Of a stretch of 64,000 nt of DNA, positions 125 to 15,600 are shown piece after piece; position 1 is the stretch's first letter, and each line of letters begins with the position of its first letter. The position numbers were made by a program, and so were the translations under genes. This DNA is from Lepidodermella squamata (Eukaryota; Animalia; Gastrotricha). The stretch is from NCBI GenBank assembly GCA_047495785.1, contig JBLDXI010000013.1:2604001-2668000 (forward strand), in the 5' to 3' direction. A model generated the notes under the pieces. It had not been told where the DNA came from and searched no databases. It was given only the letters and a program-made list of their open reading frames with translations.

Positions 125-1311
<1,187 letters not shown>

Positions 1312-3173
1312 CAGAAATTAAATAACTATAAAACGGGATATTGTTAGAATTTATCAGAATGTGTTCGCCGTCACAACTGCAAACGCGAGTGATTAAAAAG
1401 CCTAAATTATCTAGCAATGGAAGTCAAATGATAACCTATTGAATACATCATGACTTGATGGTGGCATAGACAGATGAAATCAACTATGAACTATGAATAA
1501 ATATTAACTATGGGCCTCCTTCAATAACTCAAGGCTACGGGGTTTACGATTGTCATCGGAAAATTCCTTAAATTTCTCAGAGTGTAGAATACAGAATTAA
1601 TAACAACGATGACCAAGGCGAAGTCGAAATAATGCAGCCAACATCGACACCCAAGATTGCACATTGATCGTGGATCGTTTAGATAATGCTTGTTCTTAAT
1701 TTACAATTTGTTATAAGTTTCAAGCAGGATAATACCAATAATTGACAAGTTCCTTAAATTCTGGAGATAATCTCGCATATCGCATATCACCCCTCTACCT
1801 TCCTTACTGAAGAAGGTGTAAGCATCAGGCCTCGAGCTGAAATCTGAAATCATAGTTCACAATGGCTGTTAGCTTAATGAATCATAAAGCCAGATCGTAA
1901 CCTTTAATTAGAAACGAACTTGGATACTAGAAAAGAGGTATTGACGGTTAGAAGAACCACAAAAAAGTCTCCAAGTTTAGGTCAATTCATTAATCAGCCT
2001 TATTTTATGTCGCTCTGTGAAGTAGTAACCTTTGGAACTCATCCTTTTTCGCGAGATTTTTTGCACTTTTTACCATTCAGCCTTGACGTAAAAACTCAGA
2101 TTTAAATAGTTTGATCAAATAATTAATTGAATACGAGAAAATGTTATTTGTTATAAAAAGCGTCCTTAGCAAAGGTGTGAAGCCCTTTCGGCTACCACGA
2201 GTTTCACGGTTTCCACTTTTGTCGGCCAGTAAACAGTCAAATTTCGGGGGACAGACCTGCTACGAAACGAACATAGTGTGGAAAATGTGCGACTTTAATG
2301 ATGCATAATTTCGGGAGCTGTGTTGTGGGCTTGTAGTGGCACTGCATCTAATATCAGACCATCTAAAACGCGCTCATCGAATTGTTGTGACATCCTTGTT
2401 GAAGTCACCATTCAAGTCGCATGAAAAAAGAAAGAGCAAACTGGAATCGGGGTAGTAATCTGTAAGCCCGACGCATTGTCTATTGATTTACGAACTGATA
2501 TAGGATTTTTTTTGGAACTTACTACTTGATATGGTTCAAATCCTGAAAGTTATGCCTAAGTATGTTGGGAAGTAGCATCCATATAACAAATCAAAATGCT
2601 TTATTTTTCATGCTATCTTAGAAACTGACGCCGTGATATTTTTGCAATAAACCGCGCCCCGTTATATTTCCGAATCCATTGTGCAGCTTGGTGTATGAAA
2701 ACAGGAGAACTTTGCTTATTTTCGGGTCTTTAAACTTGTTCTTATTGCCGCAACGTTCTGCTTCTACTGCTTCTGCGATGCCAGCGTTACAGTGAATGGG
2801 ATCGCTTACGACTGGCATAAGCTATTGGCATGACTTCGAGACGCTATACATTACAATAACGAAGCTTGACGTTATGTTTGATTCCTGAGTATCTCTAGCG
2901 CCCAGAGATCTATCGCGCCGTTAGAGAATCTAAGAAGGTGGAGATTTGACGTATTAGGGTCTTGCTATAATTTAGCAAGAAAATTAACCATTGTAACAAA
3001 ACCGCTGTTGTCACAATATTGCACAATATGTCACAATCTATATCAAGTTTATATCAAGTTTATAGCGTAGATTGCTGCATGGAAGAGAGCCGCCGCAAGT
3101 ACCTGATGAATGTAAAATGTATACTTATAGGTTGTGTGCATTAAGTACGTTATTTTAAATTGATTCGAAAACA

Positions 3174-4295
3174 ATGGAGTTGCGGAAAAGTGAGGCTATA
3201 CTAGGTTAGCACTTTTTAATCAAATATTTCAAATGCTGAGAGGATTTTTTACTCACATGAACTATAGAGAAGTCAACGACGCGGTCTTTCATGGTTTCAC
3301 TGTTCTCGAGGATGATACAGCAGCAATCCTCGCCGGCTGATATTATCCAGCTAATTAATGAAACGTTCGTTCTTAGTTCAAGCCATAGGCTTCATGCTTT
3401 GAAATAATAAAAATATGCATGTTATTTCAGGATGGAAGTTACGGATGTTGGTCACTCAACAGTCTCGCCATCAGTTGCAGTAGATCGAGCTGTGCGCATC
3501 CTTATCGTTACTCACTGGGCGCGACCGACGTTTACCAGCGACATCTCCGCTGCTTACAAGCTCTTGTTGCATCATGCGAAAGGTATGGCTGGGTCGGCAA
3601 ATAATCAGCAACGAGGTATAGAGAGAATTCTCTCCTGGAATTTAATCAATGGTTACATTTGATTCATGAAAACAGGTTCGTTGTCTCCCGGTCTTGATGG
3701 TGCCTTGTTCAACTTCGTCACAGAAAAATTGATCGAGTAAGCCTTTTTTGCAAATGTTTTACAATACGTTAATGCATATATGATCAGGTCCTTCTTCCTC
3801 AATGGGAGCATTTCTTCTTATATTGTTCAACGAGTATCACGCCGCCCAACGGATGCTGTGTCATTTCCCAGCTTTCACAGTGCAATTTTAGCCTGCCAAA
3901 TCGCTAAAGGTTTCTCTTGGTTTCCTCATTATGAATTTTTCGAAATAATATTTTCTTTACCTAAGATATCGCAGCGCTTTCTGTCAAGCTTTATAATGGC
4001 ATTCAAGATCGAAAATTGAACGCTAAGGTGCTGACTGATCAGCTTCGCCATGCTGCCAAGGCCATGACATCAATCACTAGCATGCCTCTGCAGTTGTCAC
4101 AGTCATCCTCTAATCCCTCGCTGAGTTACTCTCGAACACCAGATTTGGGTTATATTACTCGAAATACAAGTTACGCAAGGTAACTCTTCTCTTATACGTT
4201 ACAGTTGCAATCAGTCAAAATTCGTATTGAAGTGTTTTGTCAGATTGCTTAGTCGCTTTCAGGCCATCCAAAATCATGTCTATCAATGGTATTAA
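3174..4295 (+). CDS. Uncharacterised 7-exon protein (~242 aa). Exons 3174-3204, 3268-3364, 3431-3582, 3676-3736, 3788-3909, 3966-4179, 4244-4295
   Basis: Six GT-AG introns join into one 729-nt open frame (MELRKSEAIL...RLLSRFQAIQNHVYQWY*). No family motif recognised; the start may lie further upstream. Confidence 0.65.
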
Positions 4296-5188: not shown

Positions 5189-5298
5189 CTACCAACAACA
5201 AAAATTTATTGAGAATATTTTGCAACAGAACAATTAAATAGCCCATTTGGCGTGGGTATCACAAAACAAGTGAGTGAGTAAAAAGTGAGATTGAGCAA

Positions 5299-6189
5299 TT
5301 AATTATCGTTTTCTTTGGGGTCTATATCATAGTTATTTTCTGGCACCGTAAATAGCCCAGCATTAGGGTTTCTCGGCGTTCGCATTTGATTCAAAACTGC
5401 TTCAACGCGGTCACGAGATCTTTCGACAATTGCATCTTTGGTAGCCTCCATCATGTCAAATGGATCGGTGGAAATTTTCGAAGAACCAGAAGGATTTTCA
5501 GTTTTTGATTTTAATTTTTCCTCAGCGTCATCATCGGAGTCGTCGTTGTAATCGTCGCCATCCAAATGCAGAAGCTTGGGCAATTTCTCCAACAAAATTT
5601 GTTGATAAGTATCAGGCTTGCAAACGCTGTTACCACGAAGGTCCAATATGACTAAGCTGCTTGGAAAAGGAAGATTTCTCAAGTCAATCTCATCGATATT
5701 GTTATGCGATAAATCTAATAATCCAAGTTTCCGTAGCGAAAGTAGACATGGGGATGAATCTTTCAAATCTGATAATTTGTTGTGCGATAGACTTAAAACA
5801 CGCAAGGTATTTGACAGAACTTCCAAGCCCTCAACTTTTTCTAGGGCATTCCATTGCAGATGAAGATTCGATAAAACTGAAGGATAAAATCGCCGCACAG
5901 GTGGAACGGTGATCAAAGATTTCGATAAAGTTGGGCATTGGCCATCTCCATGGGCTATCACGCGTCCAAATATTAGGGCGATGCCCAACGTTGATGTCAA
6001 ATTTTCCCGGTCAAGCCTCAAATGAGACAATGATGAAAATACTTTAATTCCACAACGGCACGTTCCGGACGATTCAAAGGCTTCATTGTTGGCCACTATC
6101 GAATCTTTTTGCAAGCGCTTTTTCAGTAGCTTCATTCCGTCCAAATATGCTTTCAGCAACTCCTCCTCGTTCGACTTATTGCGGGCCAT
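5299..6189 (-). CDS. LRRC46: Leucine-rich repeat protein, LRRC46-like
   Basis: LRLDRENL, LHLQWNALEKVEGL, LSLSHNKL, LDLSHNNI, FPSSLVILDLRGNSV and LPKLLHLDG (LRR cap) follow the LRRC46 pattern; ATG at 6189. Confidence 0.75.
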   Translation of the reverse strand: MARNKSNEEELLKAYLDGMKLLKKRLQKDSIVANNEAFESSGTCRCGIKVFSSLSHLRLDRENLTSTLGIALIFGRVIAHGDGQCPTLSKSLITVPPVRRFYPSVLSNLHLQWNALEKVEGLEVLSNTLRVLSLSHNKLSDLKDSSPCLLSLRKLGLLDLSHNNIDEIDLRNLPFPSSLVILDLRGNSVCKPDTYQQILLEKLPKLLHLDGDDYNDDSDDDAEEKLKSKTENPSGSSKISTDPFDMMEATKDAIVERSRDRVEAVLNQMRTPRNPNAGLFTVPENNYDIDPKENDN

Positions 6190-7541
6190 TAAAAACACTA
6201 GACGATAGAAAAAATTTGCACGAAGCAATGATTGTTGAGAAATATAGCATATTTTGCATGAAGCATTTTCTTACACTGTACAAAATCTCTGGCTATATAG
6301 CCTCTAAAATGCTCACGTATTTACCCGCCATAGAACCGCATAATTAGTCCAAAAACAATTAAAAACAGCTGTGTTTCAAGATAAATAGACACAGAGCTAA
6401 ATACCAACGTCTACATAGCCAGAGATTTGTTACAGTGTACGTAAAGAAGATCATACCTTAATTCAAGTCAACAATTCAAGCCAACGACAATTTTTTACTA
6501 ACTAATTCAAGACTCCTCCAATTTTGCATTGGATCAAAGTGCATCATCTGAATGTTAATGTTGATATTGACTGCTAAACTAGGACCCGTAAAATTGCGAT
6601 AAAAGAGAAGGGCGATGCGCAAAGGACACTTCATCGAGTCGGTTGTACTCTGATATGTGCCCATAAGCCATAAGGTGAAAGTCAAGGCTAGGCTCAGATG
6701 TTACTTAGGATCAAGAATCTGGCTAGGAGCCGAACCTGGCGGTTAGATTGCCCATGGCTTTGATAAAAAATCCTGACAAACTATTTCTTAATGCTCGAAA
6801 TTCTCAGAGGAACCAACACCTAAATCGTCATTCGTCATCCCCAGTCAGGCCTAACAGGCCTTAGTCAGGGGCTTTCAACAGAACGACTGAGCAGCGAGTA
6901 AGGTCCTCTGGGATGCTTGTTTGACCAGCCAATACGCTGATCATACCGTTGAGCCGTTCGCGGCGACAGAATTGTTAGTACCCTCCCTTACCCTACAGCT
7001 TAGGAAGCACATCAGCCATCAGAGAGCCCATGGCAAACTAACATTTCAACCTCAGCAAACTAAAACGTCGGCGTGGTTACAGATGACGGCGGTCAAGGTT
7101 AGGCCATGATTTTTTTGTATATATTTTTTCAAGTAGCGAACATATTCACTTAACTTATTTGAGCGGCGGAAATCATAGTTAGCCATGAAATATGCAAGAA
7201 ATGACGATGAGAACGAAATCAATGTTTTTGAAGGCGAGTTCCTTTGGCGCGGGGTTGGTGTGGAATTTGTGAGTCACGAAGTGCAAATGAGACTTGGCAA
7301 TAGGTCTTAGGAATCTCCGAATAGGAGTGGCTGTTGTCTGTGGTCGAAAACTTGCTGCTATAGTTAACTGAATAGCATAAGCTAAGAAGCAAGAACTGCA
7401 TTAGCTAAAGAGTTGATAGATCTTCAGTCAAAAATTCTAGACTATCAAATGTTTCATATCTCAGGCAAACGTTAACCCATGCCCATTCGTTTTTTTTTGT
7501 CTCTAGATTTTTCCGCTAAATTTGATTATCAAATCCACTAA

Positions 7542-8519
7542 ATGGCTTCAAACGGAGGTGGCAAGCAGTTCAAATGCAAGATGGTATTGCTTGGAGAAAT
7601 GGCAGTGGGAAAGTCTAGCCTTGTGATGCGTTTCGCTCGCGGTCAGTTTCGCGATTACCATGAGCCAACGATTGGTGCGGCGTTCGTAACTCAAACTGTG
7701 CAGTTGCCTGACGGAGCAAGTGTAAAATTTGAGGTATTTATGCTTCATTTTTGGATTGACGGCACAGACTTGCGTGCTTTTAGATCTGGGATACGGCTGG
7801 ACAAGAGCGTTATCATGCCTTGGCTCCCATGTACTACCGTGGAGCGCACGCTGCGCTGGTGGTTTACGATGTTACAAACGCAGAATCATTTGACAGGGCA
7901 AAAGCTTGGGTAGCTGAGCTGCAGAAGCAAGCATCCGCTGATGTTGTTGTAGCCCTGACCGGAAACAAAGTTGATCTCGCCGCCACAAATCGCGCGGTAA
8001 ATCCAGAAGAAGCACAGGCTTATGCCGAACAGAATGGTCTGCTCTTCATGGAAACTTCGGCTCGCACTGGACTGAACGTCCCGGAGCTATTTCTCGCTGT
8101 CGGTAAGTAGACTCCATCATTTATATATATTGATGTAAAAGTGACAAGGTGAACGACTGGCTGAATTATTGTCTAACCCGTCCGAATCTACTAATGGCTT
8201 CGGTGTCGCCGCTCTAGTGTCTAGTCCGGCTAAGAAAGGATGCTGCTAGTGTAATAATCTTGCATTGATGCTTGCATTATCGCTTAGCTAAATTACGAAT
8301 CACCCAATATATGACTATTTGATTCCGCGCTCAAATTACACTTGACAATTTCTGAGCAATGTTGTTTTTTTTGCAGCTCAACGTCTTCGTATGGCTCTTA
8401 GTCTAACAGCTGATCAACATCAACAAAGAAGTGGAATGCAGTTGTCATCAAACACGGATAACGGCCCGAAACGTTCTTGTTGTGGGGGTTCAGTTGACGA
8501 CACGCCCGAGAATCGTTGA
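7542..8519 (+). CDS. Rab5: Rab5-family GTPase, paralogue 2. Exons 7542-7733, 7784-8102, then alternative last exon 8149-8249 (ends KKGCC*) or 8377-8519 (ends [16 protein letters not shown])
   Basis: [46 protein letters not shown] and ETSAR motifs; two intron positions are shared with paralogue 1. Confidence 0.9.
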
Positions 8520-9617
8520 TGACGGACGTTTACTGTTTTTTATATTCCAGTTAGTGAATGTTTGTGTTTTTCTTCATTATTTTCGCCGCCAGTCGAAATG
8601 AACAATGCTTTCTGAATTCTTGTATATACGCTAGTGCATTAAAGATATTTAACTTGACGAAATTTTTTGACTGAAGATGAGCATGACTATTCCAACTGCT
8701 GGCTTTGTCGAAGCCTTAAATCTTATACCGATGCTGTAGTTAGTATAACAGATCGTCTGACTGTTTGTATTTTGATTGTATCTGAAGTAAACACATGGTA
8801 TTTGTTCGATATAGTATAATCTGTCAAGTTTTGGAACCCGTTTCGCTTACTTCAGATCTACTTCCAATGGTACTCCTATTCTGGTCGATACTGGTGCCCA
8901 GACATGCATCTGTACTAGTGTGCGTGTGCTTCGCGTTACTCCTTGAGTTTATTTGAGAATTTTTCACAATATCCAATCACGGCCCCAATCTATTTTATAA
9001 CTGAAAGCCCCCGACTCTCACGTAACGTCTATGGACGAATGTATTTAATTCGACGACTCCACATGCTTTTCGAAACAGGACTTGAAATTTTTGTTGTTCG
9101 TTTTTTGATACGGAGCTGCGTAAATGAATAAAACAAGTTACGAAGCGTCAAAAATGTCGATTTATTTACAGATCGAATTACTTCACTGGAAAATCACCTT
9201 CATCTCAAGTCACACGGTTTCATCATTGACAAACGAAAATCGCAATGATAAAAGAAACAGAATACTCGTACTACACAAGAAGAGGGCAAAGAAAAAGCAA
9301 GTCGGGCACCGATGTTACTTTAAAAAATTCAAATCGCTAGGATTATAATATCTACACGAGAAAAACTATTCTGGGTGAATAGCAAAATTATGTAAAAATC
9401 AATAAACAAAGACGAGAAATTGATACCTGCCATCGGCTAATAAAAATGGGACTTCACCTCAACGAAATGCATCATAAGCGGTTGACAAGCTTAAAAAATT
9501 GTTGGGCGGTAAACATTTATTGAGCAGAGAAATCATTCCGGTTCAGGATCCCACGTAGATTTACAAGTCAACAAGAGAAACAATAATTTTCCGCAATAAT
9601 AATAATAATTATAATAA

Positions 9618-12600
9618 TCAATTGAGATACTTTCTGCAACGACGAGCACCGCAATAACAGGGTATTTTAGAAGCAGCATCCTCCAACGGGAATTTGTAGT
9701 CGTAGGTCAGTTCCTCGCCGGCGGCGATAGGCCGGATCGCGAAAATAACAATGTGTTTGAGCCCTTCGTAACCAACTACGACTCGCGAGTAGCAATTTGG
9801 CTCGCAGCAGTGGTTGATAAACCGACCAGCGTTGCCTGACCGAGTCGCGTCGATGACGGTGGTGTCGTCGAGCCGGAACATGTAACAACCTATGCCCTGG
9901 CGTTCGTAGAAGCGTTCGCGCTGGTCAGTTAAGGTGGCTCGGATGATTTCGCCCGCGTACTCGATGATCATTTCCTGAGCTTCGAAGTCACGCAAGGCAT
10001 AAAGGCCACGGGCGTGGATGGTGGACCGGAAAACACCGACGTCGAATCGCGCCGTTTCCTTCAAGTAGCGCAAACGTGTGGGCAGGGGTAGGTCGAACAT
10101 AGTCGTGGGCCTTCGCATGGCTTTGTGAGGCCTTGACGCCTCCCAAGAAACCATTCCATTTGAAGAACCAATCGCGACCGATGATTGCTCCTAGAATTTG
10201 AACCTCAGTATAACGTAAAATATGAAAAAAACAGCAACAAACCTGCTCCGTCTCAGTTACGCCGCGCACTTTCGGCTTACGGTAGTTCGACATGAGGAAT
10301 GAAAAGACGTCGCGATGTCGCTTTTGACCCGGACACCAGCTGCTGACGTATGGCTGGGCGCGGGCACAGCCAGCCGGGTTCGGCACAGTTCTCTCGTAGC
10401 GCGCGAATCGGAATGAATAAGCAGTGGTTTCTTCATCGGCGCCGGGTAGCTGCTCAATCAAGGCTATCACCGAATTGTGCGTCAGACCGAGTAAAGAAAG
10501 ACCAGATAACGTATCGTAACTGAGCTGGGGAAAACCTCGGCTTTTACGAGCATTTGAAAGACGAGAAAACAACACCCGCCAAGCATCTGATACAAAAATA
10601 AAATATAATAAAATCCAGCTAAATAATTTTTTATGTTACCTTGCCACGTGAAACCTCGAATTTTCCACGCTGGCTCCGCTTGTTCAGAATTCGAGGTTTG
10701 AGACGGCGTGATTTCGAAGACTAAATATCGTTGCTGCCTATGATCGGCGTCATTTGAGTTTTGTTTAACGCTCGGTAGAGATTCAGTCACGACTCGATTG
10801 ACGATTTCCGCAAAGGCCAACTCGGTTGTGGGCAAGCAGGCTTTCAGCGGTGATTTCGGCAATAATGTCAATAAAGAAAGCGGAGTTCTAGGCCGTTTCG
10901 GCGCTGTCACGACAACAACTTGCTTCTTCGCTTCTTTAGCTTTCACCTTCTTCGGCAAATCACCCAAGAAAATCGAATCAGCAAGGCCGTCACGTTTCTC
11001 CAGCGGCTCTTTCCGCTTCTTCGCTTTGACCCTCCGATCTTTTTCAGCAGGTTCAGTCAACTTGCAGTCGACAGATGGATGTGGATCTGCCGATTTCTCA
11101 ACCATTGGAGATTTTTTCGGCGATGGTGCTTTCGAACTGGCGGGGCTGGGATTCACCTCCTGGAACCGCACTTTAGGAGGACTGGTCATATTCGAAAACG
11201 CCTTGTTTGGACTAGGCGAGATACTTGTTAACGAAGTCTGACGCGGTATGCTAGATTTCAGATTCGAAACGGGAGAAATCGGCGGAAGGGCAACGTTCAA
11301 AAATGGAGGAGAAGCGACCTTCATAGGTTTCGGTGGTGATTGAAGCGGGACATTTGCTGTCATCGGGGCCGGCGCAGAAATTCTACCTGGCATGCGGATA
11401 GCTGGATGTAGGGCTGACATGTTGATTCTCTGCGTAGGCGGCGAACCGGGGCTGAAAACGGGCGGGGGTGCTGCGACCAACCGATGTTGAGGTTGGGCGA
11501 TGACACCAGGAATCGGCGCGATACCCGGTCTCATAATCGCTGGTCTCAGCGTGAAAACCCTGGTACCACCGACTTGAGTACCACCAACGGGTTGTAGCCT
11601 AGCGATCGGAATCACCCGGCCAGCCTGGTTATTTGCCGGGTTACTCGGGCGATGAACAATTTGGATGACTGAAATCGGGTTTTTATTCAGCTGGGTCAAC
11701 TGCTGTTGATTTATCACAGTAACAGGGAGCGGCAATTGCTGCAAAACCTGCCGGACTGGTTTTGGCTCTTCCGACGCTCGTTTCTCGGCCTCGAATGATT
11801 CAGTTGCCTGACGAATAATTTCCGCATGCTTGTTCGCCCGCGCTCCAAACCGGGGAGCCGGGAAAAGCGACACTGGGAATAAATCCATTTCGGGCAGCCT
11901 AACGTTATTTTGCTTGTGATTGTGATTCAAAATGATCGGCACAGCTCCACTGCTGGGACTGGCAGCCCCAACCACAGGCGCAGGCCCGCTAGGCGGCAAC
12001 CACGGAGTTACCCGAAGTTTGTACTTCTTTCGCATGGTAGATGCGTAGAATTCACTCGAGGCTGAAGTTGGAACCCGCTTACCGGCTATTCCAGCCGCGG
12101 TCCGCATCAACTGAAGGGTGGTTGAAGTAGGCGTGGAATACCGAGGCAATAGCGATGAATCATGCCGCAAGAAGTCGCCGTCTTGAAAGGCAACCCTCGA
12201 CACCATGAAGTCAACGATAGGCACAACCTCAGAATCTGGCTCCGGGTCGAATGTCGCCACCGAGTTGACTGGCAAAGTTAACACCATCCGATTCACAGCA
12301 GGGATCTGCGGACCAGGTGCTTCTTTGACGGGAGATTGTTCCGGGGCAGGGATATTCGGCCGAACAACCCGAGGCGGCGATGGCAATTTGAAAGGCGAAG
12401 GAGCGGTGGGTTTATTATGAGCGAATGGAACAGCTCGGCTCAGCGCATTCTTCGGCGGCGACGACTGCGTCACGTCAGTCGAACTTTGAACCGCCCGCAT
12501 CAACGCTGGTGTGTTTGTTTCTCGCGGCGATACATCGATCAATCGTCTGACACGACTCATCACCCCAGGGTCGGTTAATTTCGAAGGAGATGGTGAGACT

Positions 12601-15600
12601 CGAGGCGACGGCGCGGCGTTCGGCGGACTGGCGTAGTTATGCGCCGGCTCTACGGCTTTAACGAAGCCGTTTTGGTACGTTTCCGGTTTCTTCGCTGGCT
12701 CGGCCAAAGTTGCTGAAACGCCTGACCAAACAACGAGGGGCTGGTGATGCACCCTTTTCGTCGGAATCTCATCGTCAAAATTCAGCGACTTTTTCGCCAT
12801 TTCCGTTGCAGGAGGCATTACAGGGGTTGGCGAAGGGGTCGGTTCTGGCCTGGGTGGTTCGGGAATAGCCGGTATAGACGGTTCGAGGTCCTTTTTCTCT
12901 TCTGAATCGTGCTTTGGCGTGAGATCTTTTTCCTCCACATTGACTTTACCAGGAGTACGAAATACGATGGTAGTCGCGATGTTGTTCGGATTTTCGAAAT
13001 TCGGCGACTGGACCGCGTCGACAACACATCGGTAGACTCGAAGGCGGGTCGGGTCTTCGACATCCCAATGAACACGTTCGATCGAATAGTTCAACGGTAT
13101 CAAGATGTGTTTCAAATCCGATAAATCGCAAATCGAGCCGAGGCGGGTGATTGACAGTGAACCGATAGCGACCGTGATATCCTGAGCGTTGAAGCCATCA
13201 AGCCAAGAGCGGCGCCATTTTATCGACTCTGGATCACAAACAAGTCGCCGATCGACTGAAAAATCGCTGATGTAACCGATCGAACTCTCGTCGTCACTAT
13301 CGTCTTCCCGAGCGTGTTCCGGGCAGAAGCAGTGATGGTCTTCGGTGAATGAATGGTCATGCTCCCGGGCGCACATGAAGTGGAAGTCAAGCTGGCAACC
13401 TCTTTCACGGCACTGCAACGTCGCACCGGTTCGCCCGCAATAGTAGCACTTCAAATGCCGGGATCGAGTCAACGCCTGAGTCACATTGCACAACTGTGAA
13501 CCTTTTTCGAACACTTCAGCCGACCATAGTGCGCAATTGACGTGAACCCAATCGTCTTGGCCAACGTAAATCAAACGACCTGAGTCTTGCGATTTTTCAT
13601 CGCCGAACCGAGTACACAACCGGCACATTCTCACGTCAGTCCCGTTTTGATTGATCGAGGACACGTTTTGAAGAATGGTCGCGTTCAATTTACTCATTTG
13701 CTTCGACGAATCTTTGTCTTTACCCTTTGCTTTCGACTTCTTGTCGTCCTTCTTATCATTTTTCTTGTTCTTATTGGCCTTGTCGCGTTTTTCACGCTTG
13801 CCCTCGATTTTCGCGAGCGTTTCAGTGCGAACTCGGTTCTTGAAAGAGTCGTTGATGTCCTCGAAAAATGACAACAACGTATTGATAACCCAAACGGGCG
13901 TAACGTCTCGAGATTTCAAAACGTTCCAGAAATCGAGGATGAAAGTTGATACTTCTCGGTAACAACTGTTAACGAATTTCTCGCAAAACGGCTGAAGAAA
14001 ATCGACCTCGGCATCGATTGCTTGTAGGGCTAGTTGGCAAAGAACCGTCTCATCGGATTCAGGTGCGCCTTGAGCCAGCGACGCGCTCACGTTTTGAATA
14101 TGCTGGACGAAAGAGCCGAGAACAACGCCCAATTTATCCCCCAACAGCTTTTGAACCCTCGCTTCCCAGGTCATAGGCCGGGTCATGTTGTGTTTCGACG
14201 CACAGCTCAAACACACGAATTTCACTGAATCAGGTAGAAATTCGAATAGATCATACAAATCGTCGGTAAGTTCAGCGCACGGATTGGCATGGATCCAAAA
14301 ATTGCACCGGCTGCATTGAAGCATGCGAACTGAGTAGTCGTCCGGGTCGTATTCTTCCTTGCATTCTTTGCAGAAATTGTGCGAACGCTCCTCGGCGCAC
14401 GGCTGGCAGAATTTGAAGTCGGACGACCACTGCGCATTCGCGCCTCGGCCCGGATTCGTAGCGCCACAAAGCTCGCATTTCACGCACCTCGCACACGCCC
14501 ATGTATTGCGTCCCTTTTTCGAGTTTTCAGGCGCTGGGTAGTTCGGGGCTAGGCAGCTCGGGTGGAAGTGGTATTTGCATTTGCAGCAACGCGCGAGTTT
14601 ATTTTTGATTGCGCTAGGTTGGAAACACAATTCGCAGTATTGGCAACTCTGGCACAGCCATGAAGAGAGGTCGATTTCTGACAGATCCACCGCATCTTTT
14701 CCATCTTCATCGTTGACCCCTGAATGAAACAGAACAAATTGGATAATGATAGCTCGAAAATCGAATGGCTTAGAACTATGAAAAATTCAGAATGAAAAAG
14801 TGAAAACTAACCCAAGCAAAAAGTGTGAAATGGATGAGCACAAAGTTGACAGAAAATCATGCTCTCGAATCCAGCCGAACCGCACGATAAGCAAAGAGCC
14901 CGAATAGACGGCATCAAACAGGTCGTAACAATCGCAATGCCTTCACTCAAAGCTCGTTGTAATGAGACATCTTCCAAAATTGCAGCACAAATGCGACGCC
15001 GCTTGGTTTCAGAATAAGCAACAAGTGGCCGAAGCGGTTCGAATTCGGAAAGTACCGGCTTCAATGTGGACACGTCAACTAATTCTTCAATAGAATCGCT
15101 CCGATTAAGCGGTTCGGTCGTCGCCGAACTCGACGGCCGCTCTTCGACCTTTATAGGAAGGACAGACCCAGAGGACTTGTTGACCTCTTCTTGCATCGGA
15201 GAATGAGATACTGACGACGGTATAGGTGAACTGCCCAAGGTGTGACTCATTAGGGAGGATCGTCTCGGTAATTCTGTTGATCCTTCAAGCGAAGTTGATG
15301 AGGCGGTTGCGTCTGACAAAACATTGGCAGGCGGTGTCTGCAACACAGTCCTAGACTCGGAGTGATTCGCCTCGATCGATTTTGGCGGGGTTTTCAACAC
15401 TTCACTGCTAGTAGACTTCGTAACAATGGGCTCTTTAACCGCACATACAGGAACAGGACCTTGATTGGGCAGCTGAATTGTTGGCAGTTTGATTCTCCGG
15501 TAAGTGAACTGTTGCAGGCGATCTTCTTCCTCGCAAACTCGCTTCTCGCAGCAGTGCCGCAGATTGCCAGAGCCACCAAATTTCGGCATGTCCTTGCAAT

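Follow-up and report, generated by a model that had tools for sequence, protein, structure and literature searches.

A stop-containing cassette exon yields two alternative mRNAs with different predicted C-terminal tails in a putative divergent Rab5 gene of Lepidodermella squamata

Introduction

The tails of Rab GTPases bear the lipid anchor and contribute to the choice of membrane, and the locus described here raises the question of whether a single Rab5 gene can supply two such tails from one pre-mRNA, and by what arrangement of exons. The locus lies in the window, a stretch of 64,000 nucleotides from the gastrotrich Lepidodermella squamata (assembly GCA_047495785.1, contig JBLDXI010000013.1, forward-strand positions 2,604,001 to 2,668,000; coordinates below count from its first letter), which contains two Rab5 genes, paralogue 1 and paralogue 2, arranged head to head. 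The original prediction, made from the letters alone, held that the G domain of paralogue 2 can be joined to either of two in-frame terminal exons, that this layout repeats that of paralogue 1, and that it is a conserved system kept by selection after an exon duplication older than the gene duplication. We confronted these claims with assembled sequencing runs, a distant relative, database and literature searches and the systems known from other small GTPases.

Results

Gene model and family of paralogue 2

The plus-strand gene is made up of the following parts:

7505-7506 (+), AG of the trans-splice acceptor at which the 5' UTR starts
7507-7733 (+), exon 1, from the open reading frame and its translation (Pfam Ras, E 4e-12); the coding part starts at ATG 7542 and holds 64 codons with the P-loop and switch I
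7734-7783 (+), intron 1, 50 nt, GT..AG, phase 0, after KFE (joint 7731>7782, cut +2, in run X4)
7784-8102 (+), exon 2, the remaining G domain, 106 codons and 1 base (Pfam Ras, E 1.5e-37)
8103-8148 (+), intron 5' of the cassette exon, 46 nt (joint 8102>8149 in X1 and X2)
8149-8250 (+), cassette exon, 102 nt, proximal tail ...SSPAKKGCC (joints 8102>8149 and 8250>8377; frame checked)
8251-8376 (+), intron separating the cassette and distal exons, 126 nt (joint 8250>8377, GT..AG with the AG ending at 8376, in X1)
8377-8519 (+), coding part of the distal exon, a 47-residue tail (joint 8102>8377 in X1 and X4)
8520-9142 (+), 3' UTR common to both mRNAs (X1 contig 8377-8892, X4 contig and signal scan)

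Exon 2 ends at LFLAV-G/gtaagt, with the donor G/GTAAGT at 8102/8103 in phase 1, and both the proximal and the distal piece are in frame with the exons at 7542-7733 and 7784-8102. The proximal piece (8149-8249) encodes a 33-residue tail ending in KKGCC, giving a protein of 203 aa when the cassette is included; its stop codon, TAG at 8247-8249, stands 1 nt before the donor T/GTAATA (GT at 8251-8252). In the distal tail, 11 residues come after CC (CCGG and nine more), and the protein made when the cassette is skipped is 217 aa long. A check against the sequence found the coordinates, the frames, both tail peptides and the 11 residues after CC to be exactly as originally predicted. The signal scan placed the poly(A) signal AATAAA at 9127-9132, so that the 3' end of the mRNA would be at about 9142.

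The G-domain motifs are intact in the translation (GxxxxGKS, WDTAGQE, NKxD and ETSA; Pfam PF00071). Among solved structures, exon 2 matched Rab5A/B/C best (155 bits), ahead of plant RABF2b (138), Ypt51 (125) and Rab31, Rab22 and Rab21 (107 or less). By these comparisons, the product of paralogue 2 would be a divergent Rab5-family GTPase, nearer Rab5 than the other Rab subfamilies.

The proximal exon is a cassette exon

Splice evidence came from assembled contigs, not raw reads, of four runs (X1-X4) covering the stretch. X3 covered exons and introns alike, which marks it as a DNA run. X1 is without depth at 8267-8368 and carries a spliced leader, and X4 supplied a contig lacking both introns, so that these two behave like RNA runs, though the run records do not say so. 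X2, about 95% alike (some 5% diverged), is labelled as another organism.

The two joints foreseen in the original prediction were both present in the assembled RNA contigs with GT..AG borders, 8102>8149 in X1 (2 contigs) and X2, and 8102>8377 in X1 and in an X4 contig of 1187 nt, from which both introns are missing and which extends 242 nt beyond 8900 to end just after the AATAAA at 9127. A further GT..AG joint, 8250>8377, was found in X1, in a single contig whose shorter side measures 30 letters and which may have extra letters at the joint. Joint depths in X1 were about 107 for 8102>8149, about 120 for 8250>8377 and about 202 for 8102>8377, and a rough reading of these contig depths puts cassette inclusion at about a third of transcripts in this one sample; the X4 contig represents the skipped form only. 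The joint 8250>8377, the zero X1 depth across 8267-8368 and the matching depths of entry and exit identify the proximal exon as a stop-containing 102-nt cassette exon, not a terminal exon. Two alternative mRNAs are thus made from one pre-mRNA, with the cassette included or skipped. Of the two terminal exons originally proposed, both are indeed spliced to the core, and only the distal one is terminal.

These data bear directly on a reading in which both exons are genuine alternative last exons and the proximal one has a poly(A) site of its own, so that splicing competes with polyadenylation. Both exons do end in a stop and are joined to exon 2, as that reading expects, but a GT 1 nt after the proximal stop is used for the joint 8250>8377, the entry depth (about 107) is matched by the exit depth (about 120), and the X1 depth falls to zero at 8267-8368. 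The signal scan found neither AATAAA nor ATTAAA between 8250 and 8376, with only an AATATA at 8306. We consider alternative last exons very improbable here and retain the cassette exon.

An X1 contig of low depth (20.8), spanning 8075-8176, retains the 46-nt intron; its translation would end in ...LAVGK and a stop, and it is probably pre-mRNA.

At its 5' end the transcript is also processed in trans. The mRNA of paralogue 2 carries a spliced leader: one X1 contig begins at the AG acceptor (7505) and bears 19 letters that do not match, CGAATTTGATTTGTGTCTA. This 19-mer has 27 copies in the genome, mostly in tandem arrays with a spacing of about 680 bp (G000 C11, C17, C19 and C54), and its copies in L018 and L019 continue with AG/GTATGT, as in SL RNA genes. 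Two other copies, L016 (G000:C2:993646) and L017 (G000:C4:652787), run on into AG and ordinary sequence without a GT donor, and could be retro-copies of trans-spliced mRNAs.

Indications of coding constraint

Coding differences among the runs were synonymous third-position changes in 13 of 13 cases. Within the cassette exon, all three placed differences (8177, 8198 and 8207) were synonymous, and a further difference in the X2 piece was left unplaced. Compared with the window, the DNA run differed mainly in the two small introns and showed 0 differences in the distal coding part.

In its sequence, paralogue 1 has the same layout

Paralogue 1 provides the comparison within the same window:

125-1311 (-), Rab5 paralogue 1, canonical Rab5, gene model from sequence
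543-419 (-), its proximal tail exon, 125 nt, ...GKKNCAC and a stop
250-418 (-), the intron directly 3' of its proximal exon
249-125 (-), its distal tail exon, 125 nt, ...GGCCGGGGP and a stop (CCGG and 3 residues)

The cores of the two paralogues are 68% identical. The core of paralogue 1 is split into four exons, and its introns follow KFE, TSQ and DTD and precede the tail; of these, paralogue 2 has only the first and the last, so that two introns are absent from it and the phase-1 intron before the tail is the same. The proximal stop of paralogue 1 has no GT directly after it. Setting 7542-8102, 603-1311 (-) and the coding region of a distant relative, locus L020 (3905-4614; see below), side by side shows a fast turnover of intron positions.

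The order of the tails is the same in both genes, KK-C(x)C proximal and CCGG distal, each with a Cys pair, and this part of the original prediction holds. All four tails start with x-x-R-L, the end of the last Rab5 helix. Against 2000 shuffles, the distal tails of paralogues 1 and 2 were significantly alike (p < 0.001), having QQ..G..L..N and CCGG in common. The proximal tails were not (p 0.06-0.11) and have little in common beyond the terminal P-x-K-K-x-C(x)C. Within paralogue 2, the proximal and distal tails gave p 0.001-0.007 in the same number of shuffles, the CC match carrying part of this similarity. At the DNA level, no similarity is left between the tail exons, and no direct or inverted repeats were found between them. 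Searches of the animal's own genome with the DNA and with the tails returned 0 further copies of either tail exon and 0 second, allele-like copies. Exon duplication before gene duplication, the order given in the original prediction, may stand as the economical reading, by roughly two to one, but is unproven in view of the non-significant likeness of the proximal tails; it would make the cassette exon an older duplicate of the tail exon, in a layout common to paralogue 1.

A third, very divergent Rab5-like gene was seen elsewhere in the genome, in L101 (G000:C15:4554500-4560500) at about 2508-3340. Sixteen extra residues are inserted between its switch I and interswitch strands, and its one tail, ...SGGCC and a stop, is continuous with the last core exon.

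A distant relative has the distal tail only

A search with exon 2 returned one close protein, P0052 (85% identical), from a 15.5-kb ENA metagenome contig (locus L020). In both places a large gene for an MLL/SET-type histone methyltransferase (PHD, FYRN/FYRC, zf-CXXC and SET domains) stands tail to tail with Rab5, a case of conserved microsynteny:

9618-14690 (-), MLL/SET-type gene in the window
5222-12770 (-), MLL/SET-type gene in L020

Because it has the same convergent neighbour, the Rab5 gene of L020 is taken as the orthologue of paralogue 2. The two proteins are 78% identical, and the third positions of conserved residues only 38%, which means saturation at synonymous sites and a distant relationship.

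The L020 gene has a single intron, inside TIG/AAF, and is without an intron after KFE or before the tail; its core continues directly into a distal-type tail, AQRLRTALALTADQNQQRQGVNLNQGSQNSSNAPCCGGGNGGEGNN, followed by a stop. When all four tails were compared with L020 by tblastn, only the distal-type tail was found and no trace of the proximal exon. The L020 tail is 58% identical to the distal tail of paralogue 2 over 38 aa, and keeps CCGG followed by eight residues (10 after CC, against 11 in paralogue 2). On this comparison, the distal tail, with its CCGG and extension, is old, constitutive and under constraint. The two-tail layout is not kept everywhere, and the proximal form is dispensable at least in the L020 relative, from whose copy the cassette exon was lost, if it was ever there. 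Since the position of the tail intron is common to paralogues 1 and 2 and to an unrelated eukaryote Rab5, whose isoforms P0010 and P0011 diverge there, the relative most likely lost this intron together with any exon inside it; a cDNA of the skipped mRNA, recombining with the gene, could account for the loss.

The idea of a conserved system kept by selection consequently needs dividing. It gains support for the distal tail, which is conserved in L020, and loses it for the layout as a whole, as L020 lacks the proximal exon and has one distal-type tail, and the third Rab5-like gene likewise has a single one.

It could be argued from the same relative that proximal inclusion is tolerated splicing noise, or a decaying duplicate, and that the distal form alone is working. 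The intronless, distal-only L020 gene fits this argument, as do the weak proximal acceptor, the exclusively skipped X4 contig and the lack of significant likeness between the proximal tails of the paralogues. Noise would not, however, be expected to leave an exon that is open in the right frame with a canonical Rab XXCC directly before its stop, that accounts for about one third of the X1 junction depth, whose joint recurs under a second organism label, whose placed differences (3 of 3) are all synonymous third-position changes, and whose layout is repeated in paralogue 1. We therefore judge noise or decay unlikely, and read the cassette as a probably functional alternative exon.

Predicted anchors of the two forms

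Skipping of the cassette (8102>8377) would yield the 217-aa protein, with a hypervariable tail ending in CCGG and nine residues. Inclusion (8102>8149 and 8250>8377) would yield the 33-residue tail ending in KKGCC and turn the distal exon, which is untranslated in that mRNA, into 3' UTR. Both mRNAs are presumably translated and stable, and the included form would escape nonsense-mediated decay because its stop lies 1 nt from the last junction. Each tail may then be geranylgeranylated at its two cysteines by Rab geranylgeranyl transferase with REP, and the difference between the tails may affect the manner or site of this Rab5's membrane association. In all four tails, a small hydrophobic patch is found 8-17 residues upstream of the cysteines (GVAAL, GMQL, SYKL and GVSL), of G-x-x-L type in both tails of paralogue 2; human Rab5A and other Rab5 proteins have GVDL, the C-terminal interacting motif, at the same place.

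In known Rab motifs, the cysteines lie within 3 residues of the C-terminal end. The proximal GCC before the stop is a canonical Rab end by this measure, and the distal CC with its 11 residues falls outside the known motifs. Prenylation is reportedly not lowered by as many as 5 residues added after the Rab cysteines (Wu et al. 2009, cited in PMC3504004). Eleven residues after the Cys pair is beyond the range tested for Rab geranylgeranyl transferase. The distal form might accordingly be pictured as lacking a lipid anchor on account of its extension, acting as a regulator that is soluble or held by some other anchor, and leaving the proximal form as the sole membrane Rab, and the positions of the cysteines in known Rabs and the short extensions reported as harmless speak for this. 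Against it, the only tail of the L020 gene is of the CCGG type with 10 residues after CC, conserved despite saturation, and the distal tail of paralogue 1 similarly has CCGG and 3 residues. As the sole tail of that gene, with CCGG conserved, the distal type would have to work as a Rab anchor and support normal Rab function. An unanchored distal form thus seems quite unlikely, and so does the unprenylated distal form allowed for in the original prediction, given that the relative has no other tail; an anchor on both forms remains our preferred reading.

Choice between the exons

The cassette acceptor, gtgacaag/G, has no pyrimidine tract, and the distal acceptor is strong and follows a T run, a disparity that had been predicted correctly. 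Exon choice probably depends on this weak, pyrimidine-poor cassette acceptor set against the strong distal one, and the acceptor strengths would fit skipping as the default with regulated inclusion. Folding of 8090-8390 gave z = 0.27, and so no local RNA structure to explain the choice.

CTTGC, often as GCTTGC, occurs in the introns directly 3' of the proximal exons, four times in paralogue 1 (250-418, -) and twice in paralogue 2 (8251-8376, +, both copies near the 5' end). The total of 6 compares with 0.32 expected, and the same score was reached in 30 of 3000 random segment pairs. CTTGC is a candidate splicing element and a possible lead only.

Searches for further relatives

A protein search with exon 1 gave no close kin (best match 75%, within a length window that excluded 217-aa proteins), and the closest match to exon 2 in a JGI metagenome scan was 71%. 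The distal tail returned 0 candidates among short proteins. Against 1.84 billion representatives, its only match was a 936-aa repeat protein, which was judged spurious. Full-text literature searches turned up no Rab5 described as having alternative tails. Most C. elegans rab genes come in a single variant, and the exceptions listed do not include rab-5 (PMC3504004).

Discussion

We think it probable that the stretch from 7507 to about 9142 (+) is a divergent Rab5 gene with a cassette exon placed in its last conserved intron, after the KRAS 4A/4B design. In KRAS, a stop codon closes exon 4A at its 3' end, and the mRNA that includes this exon still contains exon 4B, untranslated (PMC5945503). 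Paralogue 2 resembles KRAS in having tandem tail exons after the G domain, the upstream one a stop-ended cassette, in giving each tail its own membrane-anchor motif, and in having one dominant form. The KRAS tail exons are homologous; for the tails of paralogue 2, the corresponding figure is the p of 0.001-0.007 against shuffles, due in part to the CC match. Unlike KRAS, the gene belongs to the Rab family, both tails bear a Cys pair where KRAS has CaaX together with palmitoylation or a polybasic stretch, the introns are very short (46 and 126 nt), and the arrangement is found in a second paralogue as well. The predicted tail motifs of the two forms also differ from each other, GCC at the very end against CCGG with nine residues.

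The other well-known case is CDC42, in which the alternative C-terminal exons 6 and 7 (prenyl versus palm/brain) change the lipid motif and nearby basic residues (PMC9868626). CDC42 belongs to the Rho family, with CaaX/CCaX motifs and Ptbp1 as splicing regulator, whereas paralogue 2 is a Rab with Cys pairs. In a survey of 167 human Ras-superfamily genes, CDC42 was the only one besides KRAS to make distinct membrane-targeting tails (PMC9882654). C-terminal alternative splicing is listed there for KRAS, CDC42, HRAS, Arl6, TRIM23, Rab8A, Rab28, Rab35, Arl8B and Rab15; Rab28, Rab8A, Rab35 and Rab15 also have alternative 3' coding exons, but not two membrane-targeting tails, and Rab5 is absent from the human Rab genes with alternative C-terminal splicing (PMC9882654). 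Variants of human RAB5A/B/C differ in middle segments or in reading frame rather than in the tail (PMC9714508). Tail swapping by splicing has been well studied for K-Ras and Cdc42, and the survey holds nothing comparable for Rabs (PMC9882654). The mechanism is known, being of the KRAS kind, and paralogue 2 adds a Rab-family case to it; what stands out most is the long extension after the Cys pair, which is conserved.

For annotation, the layout carries a risk, as a gene caller would give one isoform and miss the other, and the arrangement is easily mistaken for alternative last exons.

Vertebrate Rab5A, Rab5B and Rab5C have near-identical G domains and differ mainly in the hypervariable tail, as do the isoforms of paralogue 2. 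Tail diversity, which vertebrate Rab5 obtains from separate genes, comes here from two genes with two spliced tails each. It is conceivable, if doubtful, that paralogue 2 switches between a canonical and a non-canonical Rab5 anchor (CC and 10-11 residues), the latter prenylated internally, trimmed or serving as a binding handle, and that together with paralogue 1 four Rab5 species would mark different endosome populations or cell types. With one G domain joined to two tails, paralogue 2 and its neighbour paralogue offer a natural experiment on the role of the Rab5 tail.
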